A DNA stretch of 63,270 nt, the filler included, from Basidiobolus meristosporus CBS 931.73 (taxonomy: Eukaryota > Fungi > Basidiobolomycota): NCBI GenBank assembly GCA_002104905.1. It is 3 parts of 3 records of this genome, joined end to end, with 100 filler letters (N's around TTAATTAATTAA, not from the genome) between each part and the next. Parts side by side here need not be neighbours in the genome. Positions count along the whole stretch, not along the records: positions 35,710 to 63,270 come from MCFE01000901.1; 2 more parts are not named here. One strand, given 5' to 3'. The notes below the pieces were generated by a model. That model was not told the origin of the DNA. It did no database searches and was given only the letters and a program-made list of their open reading frames with translations. Position numbers and translations under genes: made by a program. The number at the start of each line of letters is the position of its first letter. Position 1 is the first letter of the stretch. This document shows, one piece after another, positions 6,248-63,270 of this stretch.

Positions 6248-8537
6248 CGTGCGGTGCGGTTTCCCAAGAAGCGCGGGCGAGAGAGAGGGGATAAGAGAAA
6301 CAAGGATTTGACGAACTATAACTTTGTTAATGTACTGTACAAGAGCAGGAGCCGTGCTCAAAATCCACTATAAGAGGAATTGTAGCAAATCAATCAATAT
6401 AGAAAATCGAAATTAGTGCGGGCCTCTCGTGGTTATGTAGTCGTTATAAAAACAATGTTGATTTGTCATAAATAGCAGTCATAGGATTTGGTGGTGGAAA
6501 TAGATCGGGTAATGCAATGGCTCCGTGCATTAAATTCAGCACCAAAAAGGAAGTGGGTGTGGTCATGTGCTGCACAGTACAAATTGCCTCATTTTCCACG
6601 GTGATGAGGACATTGATGACTAATATGATCGGAAACAATTGTTATTTGCAACCAATTGATGCACAGTAATGAAATCCTTGCGGGGTATCATTTGACGAGG
6701 AATCTAGTAAAGCAGTAGGCGAAATAGATAGATGATTCTCACCAATGGGCATACCGGAATTTTCGATAGAGTGCAAATATATGTAGAAGAAAGCTGCAGC
6801 AGATCCGCAGCAAACTATTACGAAAAATTTCAGCTTGGAACAGCCTTTCACGTGACAAGCGTGGAAGTAGTGTTCAAAGGGTGCAAATCACCTCTTTGTG
6901 CGTAATGATGCTTAAATCTATGTGATTGCAAAGACCCATCAAGCCTTGTGCATTTTAGACTGAAGATTGCTTATTCATCAATACTGGCATCAATCACTAG
7001 CTTGTATCTTCAATGTTGCAGTCGACCAATTCTGCCCTTAGGCCAAAGTTGCGGGGCTTGTTGTGATTTTAAATACTCCATTTCATCACCATCTCGTTGC
7101 TATATCAAAGCCATGAGTAAACTAAAGGAGGAACCAGGCTAGAATATAGACGTTGTAGTTTACTTTAGACAGCCTATAGCTTTGCATCCTATGCGCATTA
7201 CGGAGTGAAGTATATAACGACTTCCGTTCTCTTTCACTTGGATATAAGTCTTTGGGTGAATCAAGGGAAGATTGTGCCGAATAGTTTCTTAACTACAACT
7301 AAACTGAAGCTGAAATCCGGATTTCTTTCACACAGATATTGGAGTAAGGTCTGCTCGGCCTCCAGGATGCAAAGAAACCTGACTGGCGTGTTGTAATTCT
7401 TGTATTTCAGGCCGATAAGTGATGTAGTATGCTCTACGGTGGACAGATCATCAAAGGATACTACACTGGCTAGTAGATAATCTAGTGGAAGGTGTGCTTC
7501 CTGTAGGTGCAACCTGTTTCTCAAGTAGCACCTTTACCGGATAGTTTCCTCCAGTGCAAATCCAGCACCACCATTATGTGGCAAAGGAGCTTGATGGCGC
7601 GGACCTAGTGGTAAAGTCGAAGTATTAAAATACTTTGCTCACATAAAGCATACACGGTGTTCAAGCCAGTGGGCAGAGGTGTTATATTGTGAATGTATTT
7701 TCATCTTTTACATTACTTTCTTGTGTTTGTATTGCCGTCCAGCTAAGCAAACCTCATTTCAGATTAAATCTATCCTTATTTGGGATCCGCATTGTGTAAA
7801 ACTTCTACAGGTCTGAGCTTTTAGATGTTAATCACCAAAAAATAAAGCTAGGATTACTGAAGTCAGCACCAAAATTATTCACGCATCACAAATTGCCACT
7901 TGGGAAACCTTGTTTGTACAGAATGGACGGAAATCTTCAAACCTGCCCAGATGACTCCAAACTTTTTCTTATCAGAAGCCTTTGATATATAGTAGGCATC
8001 CAACCTGTAACAAGCTTATAGCTTTTAAAGAATCAGGATTAGTGTCTACATTTAATAATGGTACTACTGGCAATTTCTAGGCACCAACAAACACTGTTCC
8101 TAAACAGAGCATGGACCCAACTGCTAGCTTTCCAAAGAGCTTTGGGTAATACAAATATATGGCTGTATTTGGGGTAAGCAATGAACAGTGACAAAAAATC
8201 CAAGAAAAATGCAATTTTGATGCTTCTGATAGGGCTTGTATTGAGAGTGGCAGTGGAAACGTGGAAGTGATATGAAGTATTTCTAGAAAATTGCGAGGTT
8301 TATCATCATTATTTATTGAGCTGAAATGATGCATTTATACGTCGTGTTTTGAAATATAATCTTCAAAATAATTTGAAGAACACAGAAAGGTCTTTTGAAT
8401 GAGTGTGAAAAATATGATGACCTCTAGCATTCTCACAATCTCCTCGAACTAGTGGGTGACATATGTCTTTGGCAAGATTAATGTCACAATCAAGCAAGTG
8501 CCATATCTATAGTATGCAGATAATCAGGTGCTAGGCT

Positions 8538-35709: not shown

Positions 35710-35995
35710 ATATAGGCGGGGTAATCCTTTTTAGGGAAGTGAACGCATAAGAATGAGCACATCTGCCTGTGGGTGTCACTGTGACCCCACTACAACGTGT
35801 AGAGCAGTCAATATCCCAGGTAGAGAAAGCAGTATTTTTGCTGCAAAGGAACTCAAGTTGCTCAATGTTACAGCCAAGAATTGAGCCTCTCTTGATATAA
35901 CAGCAGAGGAACACTGTACAGTCTTTGAAGCACAACAACAGTGCCCAAAGATAAAGCCCACAGAAAAACCTATCACTGCATGGGAGGGAGACAAT

Positions 35996-37869: not shown

Positions 37870-39454
37870 ATGCTGGCTTCCATGTAGGATGGAATATACG
37901 TCACTTGTATAGATTCTGATCTCTGATACTCAAAGCAATATGGGCACTATTTTGATCAGTGATCCTGCATCCAGAATTGCCAAAGCTAAGCTGAGCCCTT
38001 CTGCTGTGGCCTTTCTTACAGATAGTAAGTACATGGCTATTTTTGGTACATGGGGTTCTTCTTCAAAGATAAGTGTGGGCCTTACTTCACTGTTACTAAG
38101 GTTTACTTTGATAGTTTCTTCTCCCACTGCATTCAGTGTTCCAATTTCACCTATGAAAGCCTTCTTGATTGGTATTTCTTGATATTGGGCAAGAAGTTTG
38201 TTTTGGTATGTAAAGTGTTGAGATGCTCCAGAGTCAGCATACCAAGTCTGAAAATCCTTGTTTGTGGTCATATTTGGTGCAGATATGAGTAGTCTATCCT
38301 CAGTTGCTGCAGCAATTCCATATTCACGCTTTTTCTGCCAACTATCTCTCTTTTTGAGGCATTGGTCTGATGTGTGTCCCTTCCATTTGCAGTAACTGCA
38401 AAACAAGTTGTTATTTCCTTTAACAGGCCTTGGCTACCCCCTTTGTTGGTTATCAACACTTACTGAAGTATTTCTTCTTCCTTCTTATTTGTACTTGATT
38501 TTCTTAATTCTTCATCCAGGAGCCTTCCATATATGTAAATTAAGGTCAAATCTTCATCTTTGGACTTCAGGGCTGATAAAAGGCCCTGAAGCTTGTCTTT
38601 CAGGCTATTTAGAATGGTAACTATCACATCCTTGTCAACAGTTGATAAATCCACAGATTCCATCTCATCCACTAGCAGGATAATTCTGTTAATTAGATTT
38701 TTCATTTCCTCTGCTGGCAACATCTTTGTATTAAGAGATTTTTGTCAAAGATACATTTTCTTAGCAGCTGGATATGAATGGTAGGTGTCTTCTAATGCCT
38801 TCCAGGTATTCTTTGCAGCTTTTGCTCTTGAGCATTGAATTAGCAATATGTGTTGAACATTTAGGCAAGTGCAGTTAGAGGCACCTTGATGATTCTTCTA
38901 GTACTTTAAGACATCCTCTCCCACATTTTTAGTAGGGCATCTTCTCCCATGACAATGTCCCAAAGGTTGCTTTCTAGTAGCAGCATCTTCATCTTCACCT
39001 TCCACACTTGGTAGTTAGATCCATCAAACTTTTCAGCAGAGGGAGTAATTCCAGTAATAGCAGTAGTAGACATTGCAGAGAGTGACAGCTTGGGGATCAT
39101 AAGCTGTTGTAAGAGCCTTGGAGATATTGGAACTGATTGGGAGGATAAGTAGATTACAAGGTTCTCTCTTAATGATTTATTAAATGTAAAAGTAGTATTT
39201 ATACTTTTACATAGTCTTGGCATAACAACCACATGGAATACGTTTAGGAAGGTCCCAAGAGCATGTGTGCAGAGTTTGGGGCTGTTTGGACAACTTAACT
39301 GATTTCCATGTTCTGGGTACCTGATATTTTGGTGATAATATTCCAAGTAAATCCTAACAAGGAATTTGGTCAGTATTCATCAGGATTTATAGGTAATGAT
39401 CTAAGTGACCAAGTTAGGTGAATATTTAGGTGGAATTCCGAATTTTTTACAACA
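37870..39454 (-). mobile_element. Ty1/copia family B, copy B3: 5' LTR (39105-39454), degenerate PBS, gag (ATG 39073), protease; 3' part missing
   Basis: EKFDGSNYQVWKVKMKMLL, CSYCKWKGHTSDQC, WYADSGASQH; homologous to B2. Confidence 0.9.
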
Positions 39455-39967
39455 TATCTAAGCACATGCATACTTGATATCATTTCATCTGGGAAGCTAT
39501 ACAGGATGCTTAACTATGTTGATGTATTGTTCTATTGGCAAAATGACTGCAGATGTATTCACAAAACCGTTAGCTGGTGACACATTTCAATATTTTAGAT
39601 TGCAATCCAGCCTGGCTAATGTGGAAATTTAGTTGAGTGGGAGTATTGTGGGGTTTGTAATTACACCGGAATATCTGCCACTTGAATCACAGGATATCAT
39701 CTTAGAGTATTCTGCCCAAATTCATTATTAGGACTTGGAATACTCCACCAAAATATTGGGTACCCGGGACATGCGAACATCTCGAAGTTGTCCAAAGACC
39801 TCGAAACATTGCACACATGCACTTGGGACCTTATATTCGATGTGCTTGTCTTGCCAAGACCAAGTAAAAGTGTAAATACCTCCTTTACATTCAATAAATC
39901 ATGAAGTGAAACCACATAACCTCCTTGTTCTCCCAATCACTTCCAATTTCTCCAAGCTCTTACAACG
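39455..39967 (+). mobile_element. Ty1/copia family B, copy B4: RNase H C-terminus, PPT (39631-39643) and 3' LTR (39644-39967)
   Basis: KHMH.*YHFIWE..YCSIGKMTADVFTKPL then agttgagtgggag PPT and an LTR matching 16018-16364. Confidence 0.8.
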
Positions 39968-41993: not shown

Positions 41994-43874
41994 ATGAAGG
42001 TGGACTACCCACCCACCCCCAAAAGCTCTGCCGGCGAGTTCACGACCCCCTCCGTGGTCGTGGAAGAAGCACCCCCAAAGGCCATAAAACAAGCCAAACT
42101 GGGCATGGTAAGCACCGTTGCACTACCCCCAGGCAGCCATCACTTCGTCCTAATCCCTGCGGTAATTTAGGGGTTCTCCGTCCTCTACGAGGATCGCAGT
42201 CAACTGGTCAAACTGACCCGGTATTCTCAGCATTTCATAGAGCTGGATCAGAAGGTGAATAGGCACTTCCCCTCGAATTATTCCTCCGACCAGCCCTTAA
42301 CCACGCTTCAGTTTAAACAGGGGTTTCCGAAGAGCCGACCTCCACTGCCCCCTCTGGAAGAACGGAAGAACCTGATCTCCCGACAATACATCCGGAAGAA
42401 ATCCAACGTCGGAAAGCTCCACGACTATCTGAATCGGGTGGTTCACGACCCGAGGCTTAGGGCCTCCAAGGTTTTCAAGGAGTTCCTTTCACTGCAACAA
42501 GATGGCGACAGCAGACACAAGAAGGAGCTGAGCATCTCTGAGGAGCTCTCCTCCGATGAAAGCCTGACCACATCACTGGCGGCCACAATGGGAGCCAAGC
42601 TGACTTTGGAGGACTTCCATCTGATCAAGGTCATAGGCAAGGGTTGTATGGGAAAGGTAAGCATTCCACTGACCCCAAGAGTCGTCAGAATCTAAGCCTT
42701 CTCTCCAACCAGGTTTTACTGGTCCGTGAGTACGCCACAGGAAAGTTGTTGGCATTGAAGGCGATCTCGAAGGAATGGGTGATCCTACACCGGGAGGTGG
42801 AGCATACCAAGTCGGAGCGGAACATCCTGGCCACCGTCACCTCGGTTCAGCATCCATTTCTGATCCGGCTGCATCACTCGTTTCAAACGAATTCCCAGCT
42901 TTTCCTCGTGCTGGATTACTACCCTGGAGGGGATATCGCTACTCAGCTGGGGAAGTGGCACTCGTTTTCCCCGGAGAGAAGCAAATTCTATGCTGCCGAG
43001 ATAGTTCTAGGTATTCAGGAATTGCACCGTCTTGGGATCGTCTACAGGTGAGCGCCGTTTCTACAACCTTAGGGCCCGGAGCCATCCATGCACTCCTCTA
43101 ACCTGATTAAGGGATTTGAAACCAGAGAACATCCTCATAGCCGACGACGGGCACATCGTTCTTACGGACTTTGGCCTCTCAAAGCAACTCTCCAACAGCA
43201 ACTATCAATTCAACCCCCCTACCACAAATACCTTCTGCGGCACGGCGGAGTATCTGGCACCTGAGGTGTTAAGAGCCGAGGACTATGGGTTCCCAGTGGA
43301 TTGGTGGAGTTTAGGAACCTTGCTCTACGAGATGCTCACCGGGATTGTTAGTATCCGGATAAAGAATAAGCTTCTATTTGAGGAGTTCGCCACTAATCCT
43401 GTCTGTTTGCAGACGCCGTTTTGGGCAGAAAACCATGCCCATATGTATCAACGCGTTCTGCAGGATGAGCTGGAGTTTCCAGAGGAGCTCGAGGAGTCGG
43501 CGGTGAGCTTTCTTACCGAGGTAAGTCCAGGCCGTGTGGATTCCCGCCTTATCCGTAACCTGACCCCAGCACCTTGCTAGCTACTGCACCGAGATCCACG
43601 TAAGCGACTTGGGGCAAACGGTGCGGAGGAAGTCAAGTCACATCCCTACTTCGCCGATATCGACTGGGAACGACTGTACAATAAGCAGGTGGCCAGTCCC
43701 TATGCACCACCACTGAGTGACGAGCAGGATCTGTCGAACTTCGACGAGACGTTCCTGGAAATGACGCCGCGCCTTTCCCCACCAAACCACCACCTGAGCT
43801 CCAGTATTCAGGATTGCTTCTCCGGGTACTCCTTCACCGCAAACCACCCGCTCCAGGAAAAGTACCCGATTTAA
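41994..43874 (+). CDS. AGC-family Ser/Thr kinase with N-terminal PX-like domain (SGK/Ypk-like), six exons
   Basis: PX-like segment [48 protein letters not shown]. Kinase motifs GKGCMGK|V, ALK, YR|[28 protein letters not shown]-tail PYAP..DLSNFD and hydrophobic motif FSGYSF. Five GT-AG introns keep the frame. Confidence 0.92.
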
Positions 43875-50730: not shown

Positions 50731-51919
50731 ATGGCTGTCACCACCACCCCTCAACAAGACAAAGAGACCTCCATCAAGCATCACGGAGAAGATGTTATTG
50801 TTGAAGAGCGTAACTTGCTCAAGAAATTGACAACCAAGGACAAATCCCTCAATAAAAACGCGGTGGATGAGTACTACAAATACTGGACGGAGGATGAGAA
50901 GAAAAACTTGGACACCTATGACGAGCACGTCGAGAAACGTCGTGCTGACGCCTCCTACCTCACCAACAAGTTCTACGATTTGGTCACCGATTTCTACGAA
51001 TACGGCTGGTGCGAGTCCTTCCACTTCGCACGCGCCTTCAAATGTAAGATCCGTCCCGATGGTGATTGTTGATGACGTCGCAAACCCTCTAACCTTTCTT
51101 TCAACCCTAGTTGACAAATTCACTGACTCCATCAAGCGTCATGAGCACTACATTGGCTTGAAGCTTGCGTTGAAGCCCGGTATGAAGGTTCTGGATGTGG
51201 GTTGTGGCGTCGGCGGTCCTCTCCGTGAGTTGGTTCGCTTCACTGGTGCACACATCACTGGGCTGAACAACAACGACTACCAAATCGAACGTGCCCAGAA
51301 GTACAGCGAGAAGTGTAACCTCCAGGAGTTGACTGCTTATGTCAAGGGAGACTTCCTGAACATCCCCCTCAATGATAACTCCTTCGATGCTGTCTACAGT
51401 ATTGAAGCTACCTGCCACGCTCGCAAGCTGGAGGATGTCTATGGGGAAATCTTCCGTGTTCTGAAGCCAGGATGCCAGTATGCTTGCTACGAATGGTGCA
51501 TGACCCCCAAATACGATCCTACCAACCCCGAGCATAAGCGCATCGCCCTTGCCATCGAGGAGGGCAACGGTATCTCCCATCTTTACACCACCGAAGAGTG
51601 CCTTCAAGCGTTGCGTAACGTCGGCTTCGAGGTTATTGAGTCTGAGGATGTGATCAGCCCCAAGCCCTCTGATGAGCCATGGTACAAATGGTTAGAAGGC
51701 TCGGCATTTTCCAACTTCCGTATGTCATCTGTTGGAGCTTGGTGCACCATGAATATGGTGAATGTCCTGGAAAAGGTTGGCTTTGCCGCCCCTGGTTCCA
51801 CACAGGTATCGAAGCTGTTGTATGAGGCCAATGTTGCTCTTCAAAAAGGTGGCTCGCGTGAGTTGTTCACCCCCTCTTTCTTGTTCGTGGCCAAGAAGCC
51901 CGAGCAAGCTTCTGCCTAA
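50731..51919 (+). CDS. ERG6: Sterol 24-C-methyltransferase (SMT), two exons (intron 51044-51110)
   Basis: YDLVTDFYEYGWCESFHFA, RHEHY, SAM motif VLDVGCGVGGP, GLNNNDYQ, YSIEATCHA, EIFRVLKPG, YEW, IEEGNGI, C-terminal LFTPSFLFVAKKP. Confidence 0.96.
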
Positions 51920-52549: not shown

Positions 52550-53281
52550 TTAGGAATCTTCTCTTCGGAAAAACCAACTATCCAAGTCATACCCGTCATT
52601 CCCAGCGTTCATATCCACCGTGGCATATAATCGGTAACCAGCACTCCGAAGACCGCTGATAAGTCTCATCAACAACACGCGAATCTGCACAGTGTCGCTG
52701 CCTTGGGCCATCCAGGGATTCCCTAGAAGTTTGAACTCAAAAGCAGTATTGTAGTTTCTTTCGTCCTGTATTTTCCACAACCCTTGGATGATACTTCGCA
52801 CCAACTTGGGAACGTCGGAGGGAGCCTCGATGATTCTCAAGCGATCGGTTTGATTCAGAGAGATGGAGAAGATGGTAGGGTTGCAAACAATACCGGTGAA
52901 TTCGAAGAAAAGAGAATCCTTATCGCAGCTTTTCTTGCTGATATCGATGGAGGTTAGGTGTCTCCACCCATGCTGCTCCATCAGCCGTAAGATTCCCACC
53001 ATTAGAACACGGCTGTACACGGCTTCCTCGCCCTGCCCTAGCCAGGGATTTCCTCGTAATTTGAATTCAGGGTATCCGTGGTAATCGCGCTCGTCCTGTA
53101 TCCCTTGAAACCAGGCCCGCTTAAGCATCTCACGAAACGAATCCCTCAACTGCGGAGGAGTCCCAATGAGCCGAAGCCTATCGTACCTGTTAAGCGAAAT
53201 ACAGCATATATTCGAAGTGACGTCCAAGGTCGATTGATATGATGGAGGTGCTGGAGTTCCGATGTTCGAGTATTTTTCCAT
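52550..53281 (-). CDS. Uncharacterised 243-aa protein with two tandem ~105-aa domains and an N-terminal PPSY motif
   Basis: Intronless ORF. Both halves share ISLN..DRLR.I..P....W.IQDER.Y....EFKL.GNPW..QG...V..R.L...G.R....D......D..FF. Confidence 0.85.
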   Translation of the reverse strand: MEKYSNIGTPAPPSYQSTLDVTSNICCISLNRYDRLRLIGTPPQLRDSFREMLKRAWFQGIQDERDYHGYPEFKLRGNPWLGQGEEAVYSRVLMVGILRLMEQHGWRHLTSIDISKKSCDKDSLFFEFTGIVCNPTIFSISLNQTDRLRIIEAPSDVPKLVRSIIQGLWKIQDERNYNTAFEFKLLGNPWMAQGSDTVQIRVLLMRLISGLRSAGYRLYATVDMNAGNDGYDLDSWFFRREDS

Positions 53282-55867: not shown

Positions 55868-58800
55868 CTAATTCCAATCGCAAATAATGGAATTGTCAAA
55901 CGTTTTACAAACAGTGCCAACTGCACAATGGTTCTTGACCAGTCTGCCGTTGTCACAGGTAAAGAATACCGATGATATTCCAGAATCCAAACATGTGTAC
56001 TGACCCGGAGTACATTGTTTCTCGGGACTTGGTTCGGGCTGATTGGATTCTTCAGGAGCATTCACAGTGTGGGTAATTGTTACTGTTTCGGGAATACATG
56101 TTGGCTCATGAGCGGCTTTAGTCCGGCCAGTAAGTATTGTATCCACCGTAGTAACAGTCTCGGTGACGCGTGCTGTCTGTACAATCGTAATGGTGGATTC
56201 AGTACCAGCAGCAGACTCACTACCCTTAATCGTAGCACTAGATTCTGTATTACCCACGCCTGATGGCTTATCAGTAACAATTACGCGCTCAGTGGTTGTA
56301 TGCGCGGTGTCGGTCACGGTTTGGGCAGTTACAGTGGCATCCACATTAACGGTGGGCCTGTCCGTACCTTGGCCCGAGGCCTTCTCAGTATTAATTACAT
56401 GCTTCATAACAGTATGTGCCATGTCTGTCACAGTTGGGAAAGTACGAGTGCTATCCACGTTGATAGTAGGAGTAATAGTGCCCTCAACTGATGACTCATC
56501 AGTGACAGATGCATGATTCAGAACTGTGTGTGCTTTGTCTGTTACAGAGGTGGCAGTAACAGTGGGATCCCTGATAATGGTGGGGGTAACGGTAGCTTCA
56601 ACAGGAGTTTTGTCAGTACCGGTCGCTTTAACAGTCGCGGCTGCAACCGTTTCAGTATTGGCTTTTTCATTTAGTGTAGATCTATCCCTCACGGTTGGCG
56701 TGACAATGATCTCGAGGGATGCTTTGTCGGTAATGAAAACATGTTCGGTCTTTGCACGCACTGTATCCATGACGGTAGACTCGGTCAGAGTGCTACTTTC
56801 TCTAAGGGTTGAAGTGGCAGTAATATTAAGTGATGGCATGACAGTAACAACAACACGTTCAGTCATTGCTCGAACTCTGTCTGTTGCGGTAGGCTCAACA
56901 AGAGTGCTACTCTCCCTGACGGTTGGAGTGAGAGTAACCTGGAGAGATGGCTTGTCAGTAACGTCAACTCTGTCGGTATATGCGTCAGCAGTGTTGGTAA
57001 TGGTAGGCTCAGACAGGGAAACACTATCCCGAACTGTAGGAGTAACATTAACCTCAAACGATGGCTTGACTGACAAAATCACATGGTCGGTCACTGTATG
57101 ACCTGTTTTGACGAGAGTACGCGCAGGCAGAGTTCTACGGTCCGTGATTGTTGGAGTGACGGATACCTCAAGCGATGGCTTGTCAATTACTACCACATGG
57201 TCTGTCACTATAAGAGCAGTCTTGGTGATGGTTGCCTCAACCAGAGTATTACTGTCCTTGAGTATGGGAGTGACAGTGACTTCAAGGGATGGCTTGTCAG
57301 TTACTATTGCTTGGTTGGTGACTGTGCGAGCTGTGTCAGTATTGGTCAGCTCAGTTGATGTACTACTGTCCTTAACCGTAGGAGTGACAGTGACCTCTGG
57401 GGATGGCTTGTCAGTTACTATTACATGATCTGTGACTGCACGAACTGTTTCGGTTATGGTCGGCTCAGTAAGAGTACTACTTTCCTTGATCATAGGGGTG
57501 ACAGTGTCTTCGAGGGATGGCTTGTCAGTAACGATGATATGGTCGGTCACTGCACTAGCTGTGTCGGTGATAGTCTGCTCAGTCACAGTACTACTGTCCT
57601 TGACTGTGGGAGTCAAAGTGACATCGAGGGATGACTTGTAAGTAACGATAGTATGGTCGGCCACTGCACTTGCTGTGTCGGTGATAGTCGGCTCAGTCAG
57701 AGTACTCCTGTCCTTGACAGTAGGAGTGACAGTGACCTCGAGAGATGGCTTGTCCGTAACAATAATATGGTCCTTCACGGTCCTAGCTGTGTCGGTAATA
57801 TTCGGCTCAGTCAGAGTACTACTGTCCATGATTGTAGGTGTGATAGTGACCTTGAGGGATGGCTTGTAAGTAACGATAATATGGTCGGTCACTGCACCAG
57901 CTGTGTCGATAATAGTCGGCTCAATTAGAGTACTACTATCCTTGACTGTAGGTGTTTCAGTGATCTCAAGGGATGGCATGTCAGTTACTACAACATGGTC
58001 GGTGACAGTACTAGCTTTGCCGGTTATGGTCGGCTCAGTTAATGTACTACTGTCCTTGATCATAGGTGTGACAGTGACCTCAAGGGATGGTTTCTCAGTA
58101 ACGATAATATGGTTGGTCACTGCATTAGCTGTGTCGGTGATAGTCGGCTCAGTCAGAGTACTCCTGTCGTTGACTGTAGTTGTGATCGTAACTTCGAGGG
58201 ATGGCTTATCAGTTACTATTACATTGTCGGTGACTGGACGAGCTGTGCCGGTTATGGTCGGCTCAGTTATTGTACTACTGTCCTTGATCGTAGGAGTGAA
58301 AGTGACCTCGAGGGATGCATTGTCAGTAACGGTTATATGGTCGGTCACTGCATTAGCTGTGTCAGTGATAGTCGGCTCAGTTATTGTACTACTGTCCTTG
58401 ATTGTGGGAGTGACAGTGACCTTGAGGGATGGCTTGTCAGTAACGATAATATGGTCGATAACTGCACTAGCTGTTTCGGTGATAGTCGGCTCAGTCACAG
58501 TACTGCTGTCCTTGACGGTAGGTGTGATAGTGACCTCGAGGGATGGCTTGTAAGTAACGATAATATGGTCGGTCACTGCGCTAGCAGTGTCGGTGACAGC
58601 CGGCTCAGTCAGAGTACTACTGTCCTTGACTATAGGAGTGACAGTGATCTCCAGTGATGGCTTGTCAGTTACTATAACATTGTCGGTTACTGCACGAGCT
58701 GTAGCGGTGATAGTCTGCTCAGTCACAGTGCTACTGTACTTGACTGTCGGAGTGATAGTGACATCGAGGGATGGCTGGTCAGTTACTATTATTTGGTCGG

Positions 58801-61800
58801 TCACTGTACGAGCTGTGTCGGTGATAGTCGTTTCAGTCGGAGTACTGCTGTCCCTGATTGTAGGAGTTACTGTGACCTCGAGGGATAGCTCGTCGGTAAC
58901 GATAATATGGTCGGTCACTGCACTAGCTGTGTCGGTGACAGTCGGCTCTGTCAGAGTACTGCTGTCCTTGACTGTAGGTGTGATAGTGATCTCCAGGGAT
59001 GGCTTGTAAGTTACTATCATATGGTCGGTGACTGTACGAGCTGTGTCGGTGATGGTCGGCTCAGTAAGAGTACTACCATCCTCGACTGTAGGTGTGACAG
59101 TGACCTCGAGGGATGGCTTGTCAGTAACGATAATATGGTCGGTAACTGCACTAGCTGTTTCGGTGATAGTCGGCTCAGTCACAGTACTGCTGTCCTTGAC
59201 GGTAGGTGTGATAGTGACCTCAAGGGAGGGCTTATTAGTTACTATTACATTGTCGGTGACTGCACGAGCTGTGTCGGTGGTGATCGGCTCAGTCAGAGTA
59301 CTACTGTCCTTGACAGTAGGAGTGACAGTGATCTCATGTGATGGCTTGTCAGTTACTATCACATGGTCGGTGGCTGCACGAGCTGTAGCGGTGATGGTCG
59401 GCTCAGTCAGAGTATTACTCTCCTTGACTGTCGGAGTGACAGTGACATTGAGGGATGGCTTGTCAGTTACTACTACATGGTCCGTGACTGTACGACCTGT
59501 GTCGGTGATGATTGGCTCAGTCACAGTACTACTGTCCTTGACTGTAGGGGTGATAGTGACCTCGAGGGATGGCTTGTAAGTAACGATAATATGGTCGGTC
59601 ACTGCACTAGCTGTGTCGGAGATAGTCGGCTCTGTCAGAGTACTGCTATCCTTAACAGTAGGTGTGATAGTGACCTTGAGGGATGGCTTGTCAGTAACGA
59701 TAATATGGTCGGTCACTGCACTTGCTGTGTCGGTGATAGTGGGCTCAGTCAGAGTACTACTGTCCTTGATTGTAGGGGTCACAGTGATCTCCAGTGATGG
59801 CTTGTCAGTTACTATCACATGGTCGGTGACTGTACGAGCTGTGTCGGTGGTGGTCGGCTCAGTTAATGTACTACTGTCCTTGACTGTAGGTGTGACAGTG
59901 ACCTCGAGGGATGGCTCATCAGTAACGATAATATGGTCGGTCACTGCACTAGCTGTGTCGGTGATAGTCGGCTCAGTCACTGTACTCCTGTCCTTGACTA
60001 TAGGAGTGACAGTGATCTCCAATGATGGCTTGTCAGTTATTATCACATGGTCGGTGACTGTACTAGCTGTGTCGGTGGTGGTCGGCTCAGTCAATGTACT
60101 ACTGTCCTTGACTGTAGGTGTGACAGTGACCTCGAGGGATGGCTTGTCAGTTATGATTACATGGTCGGTGACTGTACGAGCTGTGTCGGTGGTGGTCGGC
60201 TCAATCAATGTACTACTGTCCTTGACTGTAGGTGGGACAGTGACCTCGAGGGATGGCTTGTCAGTAACGATAATATGGTTGGTCACTGCACTTGCTGTGT
60301 GGGTGATAGTCGGCTCAGTCAGAGTACTCCTGTCCTTGACTATAGGAGTGACAGTGATCTCCAATGATGGCTTGTCAGTTATTATCACATGGTCGGTGAC
60401 TGCACGAGCTGTAGCGGTGATGATCGGCTCAGTCAGAGTATTACTCACCCTTACTGTGGGAGTGACAGTGACCTCGAGGGATGGCTTGTCAGTAACCATT
60501 ATATGGTCGGTTACTGCATCAGCTGTATCGGTGATAGTCGTCTCAGTCACAGTACTACTGTCCTTGACTGTAGGAGTGACAGTGATCTCCAGGGATGGCT
60601 TGTCAGTTACTATCACATGGTCGGTGACTGCACGAGCTGTCGCGGTGATGGTCGGCTCAGTCAGAGTATTGCTCTCCTTTACTGTGGGAGTAACGGTGAC
60701 CTCGAGGGATGGCTTGTCAGTAACGATAATACGGTCGGTAACTGCACTAGCTGTGTCGGTGATAGGCGGCTCAGTTACAGTACTACTGTCCTTTACTGTG
60801 GGAGTGACAGTGACCTCAAGGGATGGCTTGTCGGTAACGATAATATGGTCGGTCACTGCACTAGCTGTGTCGGTGATAGTCGGCTCAGTCAGAGTACTAC
60901 TGTCCTTGACTGTCGGAGTGACAGTGATCTCCAGTGATGGCTTGTCAGTTACTATCATATGGTCGGTGACTGCACGGGCTGTAGCGGTGATAGTCGGCTC
61001 AGTTACAGTACTACTGTCCTTTACTGTGGGAGTGACAGTGACCTCGAGGGATGGCTTGTCGGTAACGATAATATGGTCTGTCACTGCACTAGCTGTGTCA
61101 GTGATAGTCGGCTCAGTTACAGTACTACTGTCCTTGACTGTCGGAGTGACAGTGACCTCGAGGGATGGCTTGTCAGTTGCTATTACGTGGTCGGTGACTG
61201 TCCAAGCTGTGTCGGTGGTGGTCGGCTCAGTTAATGTACTACTGTCCTTGACTGTAGGTGTGACAGTGACCTCGAGGGATGGCTTGTCAGTAACGACAAT
61301 ATGGTCGGTCACTGCACTTGCTGTATCGGTGATTGTCTGCTCAGTTAGAGTACTGCTGTCCTTGACTGTAGGTGTGACAGTGACCTCGAGGGATGGCTTG
61401 TCAGTAACGATAATATGGTTGGTAACTGCACTAGCTGTGTCAGTGATAGTCGACTCAGTCAGAGTACTGCTGTCCTTGACTGTAGGTGTGATAGTGACCT
61501 TCAGGGATGGCTTGTCAGTAACGACAATATGATTGGTCACTGCACTTGCTGTGTCGGTGATAGTCGGCTCAGTTAGAGTACTACTGTCCTTGACTGTAGG
61601 TGTGACAGTGACATCGAGGGATGGCCTGTCAGTAACGATAATATGGTCGGTAACTGCACTTGCTGTGTCGGTGATAGTCGGCTCAGTTACAGTACTACTG
61701 TCCTTGACTGTCGGAGTAACAGTGACCTCGAGGGATGGCTTGTCAGTTACTATTACGTGGTCGGTGACTGTCGAAGCTGTGTCGGTGGTGGTCGGCTCAG

Positions 61801-63270
61801 TTAATGTACTACTGTCCTTGACTGTAGGTGTGACAGTGACCTTGAGGGATGGCTTGTCAGTAACGACAATATGGTCAGTCATTGCACTTGCTGTATTGGT
61901 GATAGTCTGCTCAGTTAGAGTACTACTGTCTTTGACTGTAGGTGCGACAGTGACCTCGAGGGATGGCTTGTCAGTAACGATAATATGGTCGGTAACTGCA
62001 CTAGCTGTGTCGGTGATAGTCGGCTCTGTCAGAGTACTGCTGTCCTTAACTGTAGGTGTGATAGTGACCTTGAGGGATGACTTGTCAGTAACGATAATAT
62101 GGTCGGTCACTGCACTTGCTGTAGCGGTGATAGTCGGCTCAGTCAGAGTACTAATGTCCTTGACTGTCGGAGTGACAGTGATCTCCAGTGATGGCTTGTC
62201 AGTTACTATCATATGGTCGGTGACTGCACGGGCTGTAGCAGTGATAGTCGGCTCAGTCAGAGTACTACTGTCCTTGACTGTGGGAGTGACAGTGACCTCA
62301 AGGGATGGCTTGTCGGTAACGATAATATGGTCGGTCACTGCACTAGCTGTGTCTGTGATAGTCGGCTCAGTTACAGTACTACTGTCCTTGACTGTAGGTG
62401 TGACAGTGACCACAAGGGATGGCTTGTCAGTAACGATAATATGGTTGGTCACTGCACTAGCTGTGTCGGTGATTGTCGGCTCTGTCAGAGTACTGCTGTC
62501 CTTAACTGTAGGTGTGATAGTGACCTTGAGGGATGGCTTGTCAGTAACGATAATATGGTCGGTCACTGCACTTGCTGTAGCGGTGATAGTCGGCTCAGTC
62601 AGAGTACTAATGTCCTTGACTGTAGGAATTACAGTGAATTCCAGTGATGGCTTGTCAGTTACTATCATATGGTCGGTGACTGCACGGGCTGTAGCGGTGA
62701 TAGTCGGCTCAGTCAGAGTATTACTCTCCTTTACTGTGGGAGTGACAGTGACCTCAAGGGATGGCTTGTCGGTAACGATAATATGGTCGGTCACTGCACT
62801 AGCTGTGTTGGTGATAGTCGGCTCAGTTACAGTACTACTGTCCTTGATTGTCGGAGTGACAGTGACCTCGAGGGATGGCTTGTCAGTAACTATTACATGG
62901 TCGGTGACTGTCCGTGCTGTGTCGGTGGTGGTCGGCTCAGTTAATGTACTACTGTCCTTGACTGTAGGTGTGACAGTGATCTCCAGTGATGGCTTGTCAG
63001 TTACTATCACATGGTCAGTGACAGCACGAGCTGTGTCGGTGATAGTTGGCTCAGTCAGAGTATTACTCTCCTTTACTGTGGGAGTGACAGTGACCTCAAG
63101 GGATGGCTTGTTAGTAACGACAATATGGTCGGTCACTGCACTTGCTGTGTCGGTGATAGTCGGCTCAGTTAGAGTACTACTGTCCTTGACTGTAGGTGTG
63201 ACAGTGACATCGAGGGATGGCCTGTCAGTAACGATAATACGGTCGGTAACTGCACTTGCTGTGTCGGTGA
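55868..63270 (-). CDS. Giant Thr-rich tandem-repeat cell-surface/secreted protein (3' part; 5' end outside window) with C-terminal six-Cys CBM19-like chitin-binding module
   Basis: No stop for more than 2460 codons up to the window edge. 38-aa repeat TDHIIVTDKPSLEVTVTPTVKDSSTLTEPTITDTASAV. Ends CTPGQYTC..FFTCDNGRLVKNHCAVGTVC..SIICDWN. Confidence 0.9.
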   Translation of the reverse strand, partial: TDTASAVTDRIIVTDRPSLDVTVTPTVKDSSTLTEPTITDTASAVTDHIVVTNKPSLEVTVTPTVKESNTLTEPTITDTARAVTDHVIVTDKPSLEITVTPTVKDSSTLTEPTTTDTARTVTDHVIVTDKPSLEVTVTPTIKDSSTVTEPTITNTASAVTDHIIVTDKPSLEVTVTPTVKESNTLTEPTITATARAVTDHMIVTDKPSLEFTVIPTVKDISTLTEPTITATASAVTDHIIVTDKPSLKVTITPTVKDSSTLTEPTITDTASAVTNHIIVTDKPSLVVTVTPTVKDSSTVTEPTITDTASAVTDHIIVTDKPSLEVTVTPTVKDSSTLTEPTITATARAVTDHMIVTDKPSLEITVTPTVKDISTLTEPTITATASAVTDHIIVTDKSSLKVTITPTVKDSSTLTEPTITDTASAVTDHIIVTDKPSLEVTVAPTVKDSSTLTEQTITNTASAMTDHIVVTDKPSLKVTVTPTVKDSSTLTEPTTTDTASTVTDHVIVTDKPSLEVTVTPTVKDSSTVTEPTITDTASAVTDHIIVTDRPSLDVTVTPTVKDSSTLTEPTITDTASAVTNHIVVTDKPSLKVTITPTVKDSSTLTESTITDTASAVTNHIIVTDKPSLEVTVTPTVKDSSTLTEQTITDTASAVTDHIVVTDKPSLEVTVTPTVKDSSTLTEPTTTDTAWTVTDHVIATDKPSLEVTVTPTVKDSSTVTEPTITDTASAVTDHIIVTDKPSLEVTVTPTVKDSSTVTEPTITATARAVTDHMIVTDKPSLEITVTPTVKDSSTLTEPTITDTASAVTDHIIVTDKPSLEVTVTPTVKDSSTVTEPPITDTASAVTDRIIVTDKPSLEVTVTPTVKESNTLTEPTITATARAVTDHVIVTDKPSLEITVTPTVKDSSTVTETTITDTADAVTDHIMVTDKPSLEVTVTPTVRVSNTLTEPIITATARAVTDHVIITDKPSLEITVTPIVKDRSTLTEPTITHTASAVTNHIIVTDKPSLEVTVPPTVKDSSTLIEPTTTDTARTVTDHVIITDKPSLEVTVTPTVKDSSTLTEPTTTDTASTVTDHVIITDKPSLEITVTPIVKDRSTVTEPTITDTASAVTDHIIVTDEPSLEVTVTPTVKDSSTLTEPTTTDTARTVTDHVIVTDKPSLEITVTPTIKDSSTLTEPTITDTASAVTDHIIVTDKPSLKVTITPTVKDSSTLTEPTISDTASAVTDHIIVTYKPSLEVTITPTVKDSSTVTEPIITDTGRTVTDHVVVTDKPSLNVTVTPTVKESNTLTEPTITATARAATDHVIVTDKPSHEITVTPTVKDSSTLTEPITTDTARAVTDNVIVTNKPSLEVTITPTVKDSSTVTEPTITETASAVTDHIIVTDKPSLEVTVTPTVEDGSTLTEPTITDTARTVTDHMIVTYKPSLEITITPTVKDSSTLTEPTVTDTASAVTDHIIVTDELSLEVTVTPTIRDSSTPTETTITDTARTVTDQIIVTDQPSLDVTITPTVKYSSTVTEQTITATARAVTDNVIVTDKPSLEITVTPIVKDSSTLTEPAVTDTASAVTDHIIVTYKPSLEVTITPTVKDSSTVTEPTITETASAVIDHIIVTDKPSLKVTVTPTIKDSSTITEPTITDTANAVTDHITVTDNASLEVTFTPTIKDSSTITEPTITGTARPVTDNVIVTDKPSLEVTITTTVNDRSTLTEPTITDTANAVTNHIIVTEKPSLEVTVTPMIKDSSTLTEPTITGKASTVTDHVVVTDMPSLEITETPTVKDSSTLIEPTIIDTAGAVTDHIIVTYKPSLKVTITPTIMDSSTLTEPNITDTARTVKDHIIVTDKPSLEVTVTPTVKDRSTLTEPTITDTASAVADHTIVTYKSSLDVTLTPTVKDSSTVTEQTITDTASAVTDHIIVTDKPSLEDTVTPMIKESSTLTEPTITETVRAVTDHVIVTDKPSPEVTVTPTVKDSSTSTELTNTDTARTVTNQAIVTDKPSLEVTVTPILKDSNTLVEATITKTALIVTDHVVVIDKPSLEVSVTPTITDRRTLPARTLVKTGHTVTDHVILSVKPSFEVNVTPTVRDSVSLSEPTITNTADAYTDRVDVTDKPSLQVTLTPTVRESSTLVEPTATDRVRAMTERVVVTVMPSLNITATSTLRESSTLTESTVMDTVRAKTEHVFITDKASLEIIVTPTVRDRSTLNEKANTETVAAATVKATGTDKTPVEATVTPTIIRDPTVTATSVTDKAHTVLNHASVTDESSVEGTITPTINVDSTRTFPTVTDMAHTVMKHVINTEKASGQGTDRPTVNVDATVTAQTVTDTAHTTTERVIVTDKPSGVGNTESSATIKGSESAAGTESTITIVQTARVTETVTTVDTILTGRTKAAHEPTCIPETVTITHTVNAPEESNQPEPSPEKQCTPGQYTCLDSGISSVFFTCDNGRLVKNHCAVGTVCKTFDNSIICDWN
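56200..63270. repeat. Coding minisatellite, 114-bp unit, about 60 copies in window
   Basis: Strict 114-bp period with substitutions but no frameshifts. Copies are most diverged toward 56200-57400. Confidence 0.95.

Follow-up and report, generated by a model that had tools for sequence, protein, structure and literature searches.

The window analysed here is a stretch of 63,270 nucleotides from Basidiobolus meristosporus CBS 931.73 (assembly GCA_002104905.1) made of three joined parts, the last of which (positions 35,710 to 63,270, from MCFE01000901.1) ends in a giant repeat gene on the minus strand. The predicted protein combines at least 62 tandem copies of a Thr-rich 38-residue unit with a linker and a C-terminal six-Cys module that is probably chitin-binding. 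Translation in the codon phase that begins at 63268 yields a single minus-strand frame that is open from the edge to the stop codon at 55868-55870, a total of 2466 codons, which bears out the claim in an earlier note on this DNA that more than 7.4 kb is open; the other two minus-strand frames are rich in stops, with a stop every 10-20 codons or so in the neighbouring one. The gene is truncated at its 5' end, where the frame runs past the edge of the piece at 63270, and only its 3' part is present; the N-terminus lies beyond the contig edge, and the size of the protein (>2466 residues) and the number of units (at least 62) are lower bounds. In the order of translation, the features of the gene are:

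56657 to 63270, minus strand: core array, units 1-58 of the 114-nt (38-residue) repeat, from Tandem Repeats Finder (TRF), the in-register listing and the consensus TDTASAVTDHIIVTDKPSLEVTVTPTVKDSSTLTEPTI
56201 to 56656, minus strand: degenerate units 59-62, which keep the register of the array, with 12-19 of 38 consensus matches and 54-64% DNA identity to the best partner
56015 to 56200, minus strand: Thr-rich linker of 62 residues with an extra Cys2391 (nt 56096-56098), then a short TVT-type strand, from translation
55871 to 56014, minus strand: C-terminal six-Cys module of 48 residues, assigned to the CBM19/CBM14 (chitin-binding type-2) clan from Pfam, phmmer, a PDB profile and AlphaFold2 (AF2)
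55868 to 55870, minus strand: stop codon immediately 3' of the module, the protein terminus being ...CDWN, from translation

TRF reports one array (56901-63270) with a period of 114, 55.9 copies, 82% matches and 0% indels, and when the protein is cut at 38-residue steps 62 consecutive units fall in register without indels, in agreement with the earlier count of about 60 in-phase repeats. Units 1-58 agree with the consensus at between 19 and 38 of their 38 residues, and units 59-62 are degenerate. The composition of units 1-58 (2204 residues) is 25.8% Thr, 8.9% Ser, 7.3% Pro, 13.3% Val and 8.0% Ile, so that the share of roughly one third that had been ascribed to Thr fits Ser plus Thr (35% of the array) and not Thr by itself, whereas the near absence of Cys, Gly and Trp (0, 6 and 1 residues, respectively) is as described before. 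Pro, Thr and Ser together account for 42% of the array and Val, Ile and Leu for 26%, with hydrophobic and Thr residues in strict alternation. At 30 of the 38 positions a single residue is found in at least 44 of 52 units; His10, Asp9, Asp15, Asp29, Lys16, Lys28 and Glu35 are near-invariant, prolines 17, 25 and 36 are conserved with a Pro17-Pro36 spacing of exactly 19 residues, and the length of the unit is invariant. The array does not have the profile of a mucin-like Pro/Thr/Ser (PTS) domain, which is dominated by these three residues and has few hydrophobic residues and low positional conservation; the 38-residue unit is too hydrophobic for a mucin.

The mean DNA identity between units is 84% (range 73-99%), no two units are identical, and the differences fall mostly at third codon positions. 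The pooled pairwise proportions of synonymous (pS) and nonsynonymous (pN) differences are 0.32 and 0.10, for a pN/pS of 0.32; the units are under purifying selection, and the gene is therefore real. The units at the contig edge are the most homogenised, with partners 95-99% identical at offsets of 3-5, 11 and 14 units, and the C-proximal units are more diverged than they are. The near-edge pairs indicate recent block duplications and an older age of the C-proximal units, which is the usual pattern of divergence of a living tandem array, and which also accounts for the break of the assembly inside the array; the true number of units is 62 or more. Antisense to the array, many long open reading frames (ORFs) are present on the plus strand at 56163-62647, the largest encoding 639 residues at 59613-61532; they are a by-product of the codon pattern of the repeat and no evidence of a gene.

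Searches for relatives of the repeat placed it outside described families, as the earlier note had supposed. Pfam applied to 400 residues of the array returned only noise, with no Candida_ALS or Flocculin match at E<=1. A word search with 16 repeat units returned nothing among proteins of 334-1064 residues, those shorter than 334 and those of 1064-1357 residues being uncovered for the repeat, and a word search with the tail among proteins of 1357-4317 residues returned no relatives. A hidden Markov model (HMM) of the repeat had no significant match in the 38 relatives of the tail described below, the repeats of the paralogs going undetected; the ESM Atlas gave no usable match to the 38-residue repeat, and an exact 26-nt repeat word had no match in metagenome contigs. 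Literature searches found no paper on these Basidiobolus proteins or on the 38-residue repeat.

The C-terminal module has Cys residues at 2419, 2426, 2438, 2448, 2454 and 2463, with the spacing C-x6-C-x11-C-x9-C-x5-C-x8-C, and the protein terminates three residues beyond the last of them. The mean hydropathy of the last 25 residues is 0.04 and the highest value of any 19-residue window in the last 150 is 0.64; because of this low hydropathy the protein has no hydrophobic glycosylphosphatidylinositol (GPI) or transmembrane tail, again in accord with the earlier note. The Pfam family CBM_19 (PF03427) matches the 70-residue tail with 16.7 bits (E 0.0072), below its gathering cut-off of 20.1, and the 100-residue tail with 13.8 bits (E 0.06); CBM_14 (PF01607) matches with 13.7 bits (E 0.07), below its cut-off of 22.1. 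A phmmer search with the last 110 residues against 1.84 billion representatives gave 38 matches with E<=0.001, of which ten reached E<=1e-10. Among these relatives, P0003 (E 3.2e-14 to the tail; 20.4 bits), P0004 (1.4e-13; 42.4 bits), P0017 (21.7 bits) and P0018 (1.2e-6; 30.4 bits) pass the CBM_19 cut-off themselves. P0004 has four tandem copies of the module, and P0018 is a GH18 chitinase of Massospora cicadina, in which a Glyco_hydro_18 domain (4.6e-76) is joined to several copies. Weaker phmmer matches (E 1e-6 to 1e-3) are the arthropod peritrophin-type proteins P0019, P0022, P0031 and P0038, and two further matches, P0005 and P0016, were discarded as unrelated repeat proteins similar to the Thr/Pro-rich linker only.

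When 27 relatives were aligned, CBM_19 was matched at E<=0.01 in 14 of them and CBM_14 in four, and the six Cys residues together with G26, G45, G55 and T56 proved invariant or nearly so; the UniRef names of the relatives are "Chitin-binding type-2" or "Carbohydrate-binding module family 19 domain-containing". Tyr2424, Phe2436 and Trp2465 of the window protein are conserved residues as well. Compared with PDB, the family profile matched only 3w4r, from the CBM14 region at the C-terminus of an insect chitinase (E 0.01), and 7bwe, a squid-beak chitin-binding protein (E 0.05). AF2 supplied with the family alignment modelled the whole module with a predicted local distance difference test score (pLDDT) above 90. 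The top Foldseek matches of this model are the CBM14 of CHIT1, 5hbf (probability 0.99) and 6so0 (0.85), and structural superposition (VIA) on 5hbf, the CBM14 of human chitotriosidase, gave a Z-score of 4.7 with a root-mean-square deviation (rmsd) of 2.0 Å over 47 residues at 28% identity, followed by Der p 23 (Z 4.5), Blo t 12 (Z 3.6) and Avr4 (Z 3.5 and 3.1), with tachycitin also a neighbour. Each of these lines is weak by itself for so tiny a domain and all agree, so that the module, by its sequence and its predicted fold, belongs to the CBM19/CBM14 chitin-binding clan, within which it is divergent. The earlier description of a six-Cys C-terminal domain of chitin-binding type is supported by sequence, profile and predicted fold alike, and by homology the module would be expected to bind chitin.

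The six-Cys module had been noted before, but a seventh Cys, Cys2391, which lies 28 residues upstream of it, had gone unmentioned. An alignment of tails by MAFFT shows that most Basidiobolus paralogs have such an odd Cys, with a TVTVT-type strand after it, 20-45 residues before the module: it is present in P0002, P0003, P0006-P0010, P0012, P0013 and P0020, and replaced by Tyr in P0001. A conserved odd Cys next to the tether may form intermolecular disulfide cross-links.

The closest relatives of the tail are all from Basidiobolus. About a dozen paralogs in B. ranarum and B. meristosporus resemble the window protein in that Thr-rich repeats are followed by the six-Cys module at the very end of the protein, but differ in the repeats, which are about 118 residues long in P0001 and 37-44 residues of other sequence in P0002 and P0010. 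P0001 (B. ranarum KAK9679752.1) is the closest of all, with 63% identity over the last 87 residues (tblastn E 1e-36) and a homologous linker. Because P0001 shares the module and linker while its repeat is unrelated to the 38-residue unit, the anchor is conserved and the arrays turn over quickly. A possible homology of the degenerate units to P0001 was considered and not accepted, the BLASTP E value being only 0.012. The P0001 frame is open to the edge of its 3.4-kb contig (L001 1-1512, JASJQH010009396.1), which it reaches while still within a repeat array, and the annotated protein of 473 residues is therefore a truncated model that starts from an internal Met.

Complete relatives (P0008, P0009, P0013, P0015, P0017) have hydrophobic N-termini resembling signal peptides, varied Thr-rich repeats in the middle and the module at the extreme C-terminus; some also possess an N-terminal Cys-rich domain and others nothing else, a head domain being often absent from the complete small paralogs, which do have a signal peptide. 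The Cys-rich domain, of about 90 residues, occurs in P0009, P0013 (two copies) and P0017, and has no Pfam match at E<=0.1. B. ranarum alone has at least 12 members, mutually less than 50% identical. The family, defined by a signal peptide, Thr-rich repeats and a C-terminal carbohydrate-binding module, is expanded in Basidiobolus, and the window protein is its largest known member (>2466 residues, compared with <500 for all others known). The locus also shows that annotation misses or truncates such genes where contigs break, so that both the size and the number of these genes in Basidiobolus are probably underestimated. P0011, a protein of 63 residues that consists of the module only (B. meristosporus MCFE01000542.1, L004 6483-7087), looks mis-modelled: an ORF upstream (6483-7019) specifies both a signal peptide and an N-terminal Cys-rich domain nearly identical to those of B. 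ranarum P0017, and because of this resemblance the real gene probably joins both parts.

The fold of the array was predicted in a single AF2 run on a block of six units, for which nine further blocks of the same size served as the alignment. The best model is all-beta, with a pLDDT of 82 and a predicted template modelling score (pTM) of 0.79. Structural superposition placed it nearest to the right-handed parallel beta-helices of the SufD/SufB type (Z 12-13, rmsd 2.5 Å, 172 residues), followed by curli CsgA (Z about 10) and the helices of autotransporters and adhesins (Z 7-9; VacA and UpaB, 8-9); Foldseek gave beta-helix matches at TM-scores below 0.2 only. The stalk put forward in the earlier note is to be revised in one respect: the array is Thr-rich but not mucin-like in composition, and the best AF2 model, of moderate confidence, is a folded beta-solenoid in place of a disordered, O-glycosylated stalk. 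As an order of magnitude, 62 units stacked as a solenoid, at one or two 4.8-Å coils each, would reach about 30-60 nm, and the same 62 units fully extended would measure several hundred nm. An ice-binding interpretation of the TxT ladders was set aside, its sole basis being the weak structural neighbours MpAFP (Z 7.6) and Rhagium AFP (Z 6.3).

Several known systems resemble parts of this protein. The chitinase Cts1 of Saccharomyces cerevisiae consists of GH18, a Ser/Thr-rich region and a C-terminal CBM19. It and P0018 share with the window protein a CBM19-type module at the C-terminus after a Ser/Thr-rich region, by which each would be tethered to chitin non-covalently and without GPI; the window protein differs in that the available part has no catalytic domain and that the spacer is a repeat of 62 units (about 2350 residues) where theirs is a short low-complexity linker. 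The module is also of the same six-Cys fold class as those of arthropod peritrophins, intestinal mucins, the CBM14 of CHIT1 and Der p 23, and arthropod peritrophins and mucins likewise join Thr-rich regions to chitin-binding modules. The animal proteins, however, usually have many copies of CBM14 among true PTS mucin domains, whereas the window protein has one terminal module and a hydrophobic, non-mucin repeat. With the GPI-anchored adhesins (Als with its 36-residue repeats, Flo, Epa and the Awp proteins of Candida glabrata) the protein has in common a long Thr-rich, beta-prone stalk of tandem repeats, presumably at a fungal surface, and the A-domains of Awp1 and Awp3b weakly resemble the repeat model in structure (Z about 7); it differs from them in having no GPI signal, no Als or flocculin match in Pfam, a tether of the lectin type and a distant taxon, the organism being an early-diverging zoopagomycete and not a yeast with Als/Flo-type adhesins. 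The fold predicted for the repeat would put it in one class with beta-helices of the SufD/SufB type, curli CsgA and autotransporter passengers, but at 5-10% identity there is no sequence relationship, and with one AF2 model the likeness may reflect just a common arrangement of repeats.

The interpretation narrowly preferred for the locus is that the gene encodes a very large extracellular rod of at least 62 repeats, tethered to chitin by the C-terminal CBM19/CBM14-type module. The gene structure, the selection on the repeats, the homology of the domain, the membership in a family and the absence of a GPI tail are direct observations, and the mechanism would build on them as follows. The protein would be secreted, as the signal peptides of the complete paralogs suggest; the repeats would form a long rod, most likely a beta-solenoid, that may be O-mannosylated on exposed Thr ladders; the C-terminal module with three predicted disulfides would hold chitin non-covalently, to judge by homology and predicted fold; and the conserved free Cys of the linker may fix the protein further. 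The rod would then project from the wall, and the target of the tether would most probably be the chitin-containing wall of the fungus itself, taking the place of GPI or Pir attachment. With its binding module at the C-terminus and no second anchor visible, the protein has a geometry like that of Cts1-type tethering to the wall of the same cell.

Several observations weigh against this interpretation. The N-terminus, and hence any signal peptide, lies off the contig. No related gene lies within 10 kb of the ERG6-type gene, a neighbour of the array in the window, at the corresponding loci of two Basidiobolus genomes (L002, L003). The module of the window protein itself falls under the curated Pfam cut-offs for both CBM_19 and CBM_14, and its structural Z-scores, all below 5, are expected for 48 residues but are formally within the range of chance. 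As to the rod, the five AF2 models of the repeat score 82, 72, 37, 34 and 32, so that only two of the five are confident; the Z-scores of 12-13 are borderline for repeat folds according to the alignment tool's own note; and AF2 tends to over-predict solenoids for repeat sequences.

The explanation that survives best beside the preferred one, possible though on balance unlikely, retains the chitin tether and takes the array to be an extended, heavily O-mannosylated and largely unfolded mucin-like spacer. Ser/Thr-rich regions of secreted fungal proteins are often O-mannosylated, Ser plus Thr reaches 35% and Pro 7% in the array, and three of the five AF2 models have a pLDDT below 40, all of which would suit such a spacer; but Pro, Thr and Ser make up just 42%, the 26% of Val, Ile and Leu alternates strictly, the conserved His, Asp, Lys and Pro residues and the pN/pS of 0.32 point to residue-specific constraint, and the highest-scoring AF2 model, which has good confidence, is all-beta. 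A folded beta-rod, perhaps glycosylated on its Thr ladders, seems more likely than a disordered glycosylated spacer.

It is doubtful that the module targets foreign chitin, so that the protein would serve as an adhesin attaching cells or conidia to insect cuticle or to chitinous food particles in the gut. The module has its nearest folds among animal CBM14 domains that bind exogenous chitin, a related module occurs on an entomophthoralean GH18 chitinase, and Basidiobolus is linked to insects and to the guts of insectivores and is rich in chitinases (PMC8042737), which would fit such a role. A C-terminal module with the rod N-terminal to it, however, is built like a tether of the Cts1 kind and not like a distal adhesive tip, and the available part of the protein has no visible second anchor. 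Still more doubtful is a chitin shield, in which the family would coat the chitin of the wall against the chitinases of the insectivore gut in the manner of Avr4, which protects against plant chitinases, with the giant array as a steric cover. Avr4, a CBM14 protein, is among the structural neighbours of the module (Z 3.5 and 3.1), and the family counts no fewer than 12 distinct members (<50% identical) in B. ranarum, many of them just a signal peptide, a Thr-rich region and the module, but the proposal is purely inferential and shields of the Avr4 type are small single domains. That the array is non-functional, being satellite-like, an assembly artefact or a decaying pseudogene with an accidental frame, is very improbable. 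In its favour, the contig ends within the most homogenised part of the array, the protein is absent from the collections searched and ACN-rich codons seldom reach stops by one mutation, but 7.4 kb is open in one frame only with a pN/pS of 0.32, the reading frame of the array carries on through a conserved linker into a domain that keeps every invariant residue of the family, and the units are different enough (84% mean identity) to be assembled uniquely.

With regard to the preferred interpretation of a chitin-tethered rod, the combination of a Ser/Thr-rich region with a CBM19/14 module is of an already known kind (Cts1, peritrophins, Avr4-type proteins), and the module is annotated automatically in the Basidiobolus relatives. 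What is new is the scale of the protein, with >2466 residues and at least 62 units; the undescribed, strongly conserved 38-residue unit, with its predicted solenoid fold; and, from comparison of the paralogs, the conserved extra Cys and an apparently chitin-tethered repeat family that is expanded in an early-diverging fungus. To our knowledge, the anchoring of fungal wall proteins has been worked out almost wholly in Dikarya, in the form of glucan-linked GPI remnants, Pir linkages and disulfides. The locus and its paralogs point to a tether of the lectin type, with a single C-terminal CBM19/14 module and a free Cys, as a recurrent design in an early-diverging fungal lineage, and the 38-residue unit is a tractable object for structural work on beta-rods with Thr ladders. 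The Basidiobolus lineage includes gut symbionts of insectivores and occasional human pathogens. A broader proposal, speculative and rather unlikely as a whole, is that Basidiobolus, and perhaps other zoopagomycetes, might build their surface in an undescribed way, from long fibrils of beta-solenoids with lineage-specific Thr/Val repeats that are attached to wall chitin through C-terminal CBM19/14 modules, could be cross-linked through Cys, and serve in shielding or gluing. If such a fibril coat exists, it could protect chitin against the chitinases of the host, or make cells adhere to chitinous substrates, in a fungus that dwells in the gut and is associated with insects.

The remaining features of the same part of the window are:

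52553 to 53281, minus strand: ORF of 243 residues with an apparent internal duplication, each half having a DER-Y...F-KL-GNPW motif
50731 to 51919, plus strand: sterol 24-C-methyltransferase (ERG6-type), two exons
42255 to 43580, plus strand: exons of an AGC-like Ser/Thr protein kinase with short introns between them (Pkinase 2e-16, 2e-26)
37930 to 39346, minus strand: fragments of a Copia-type retroelement, with Pol_BBD and DUF4219 matches

No Pfam family covers the 243-residue ORF, an exact look-up of it returned nothing, and neither it nor the giant repeat protein has a record in the contig collection searched. The ERG6-type protein of the window is 91% identical to that of B. ranarum and 89% to that of B. 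meristosporus, the next best organism being at 55%, which assigns this part of the window to Basidiobolus. At the DNA level the gene of the window shows only 75-80% identity to its counterparts in B. meristosporus (L002) and B. ranarum (L003), whose flanks are not syntenic with the window. The B. ranarum assembly GCA_040143965.1 is that of strain AG-B5 (bioRxiv 10.1101/2025.03.31.646025). The DNA at 39105-39966 is 73-87% identical to several sites in L002 of B. meristosporus and to the end of L001, and because of these similar copies it belongs to a repeat family common to Basidiobolus genomes.

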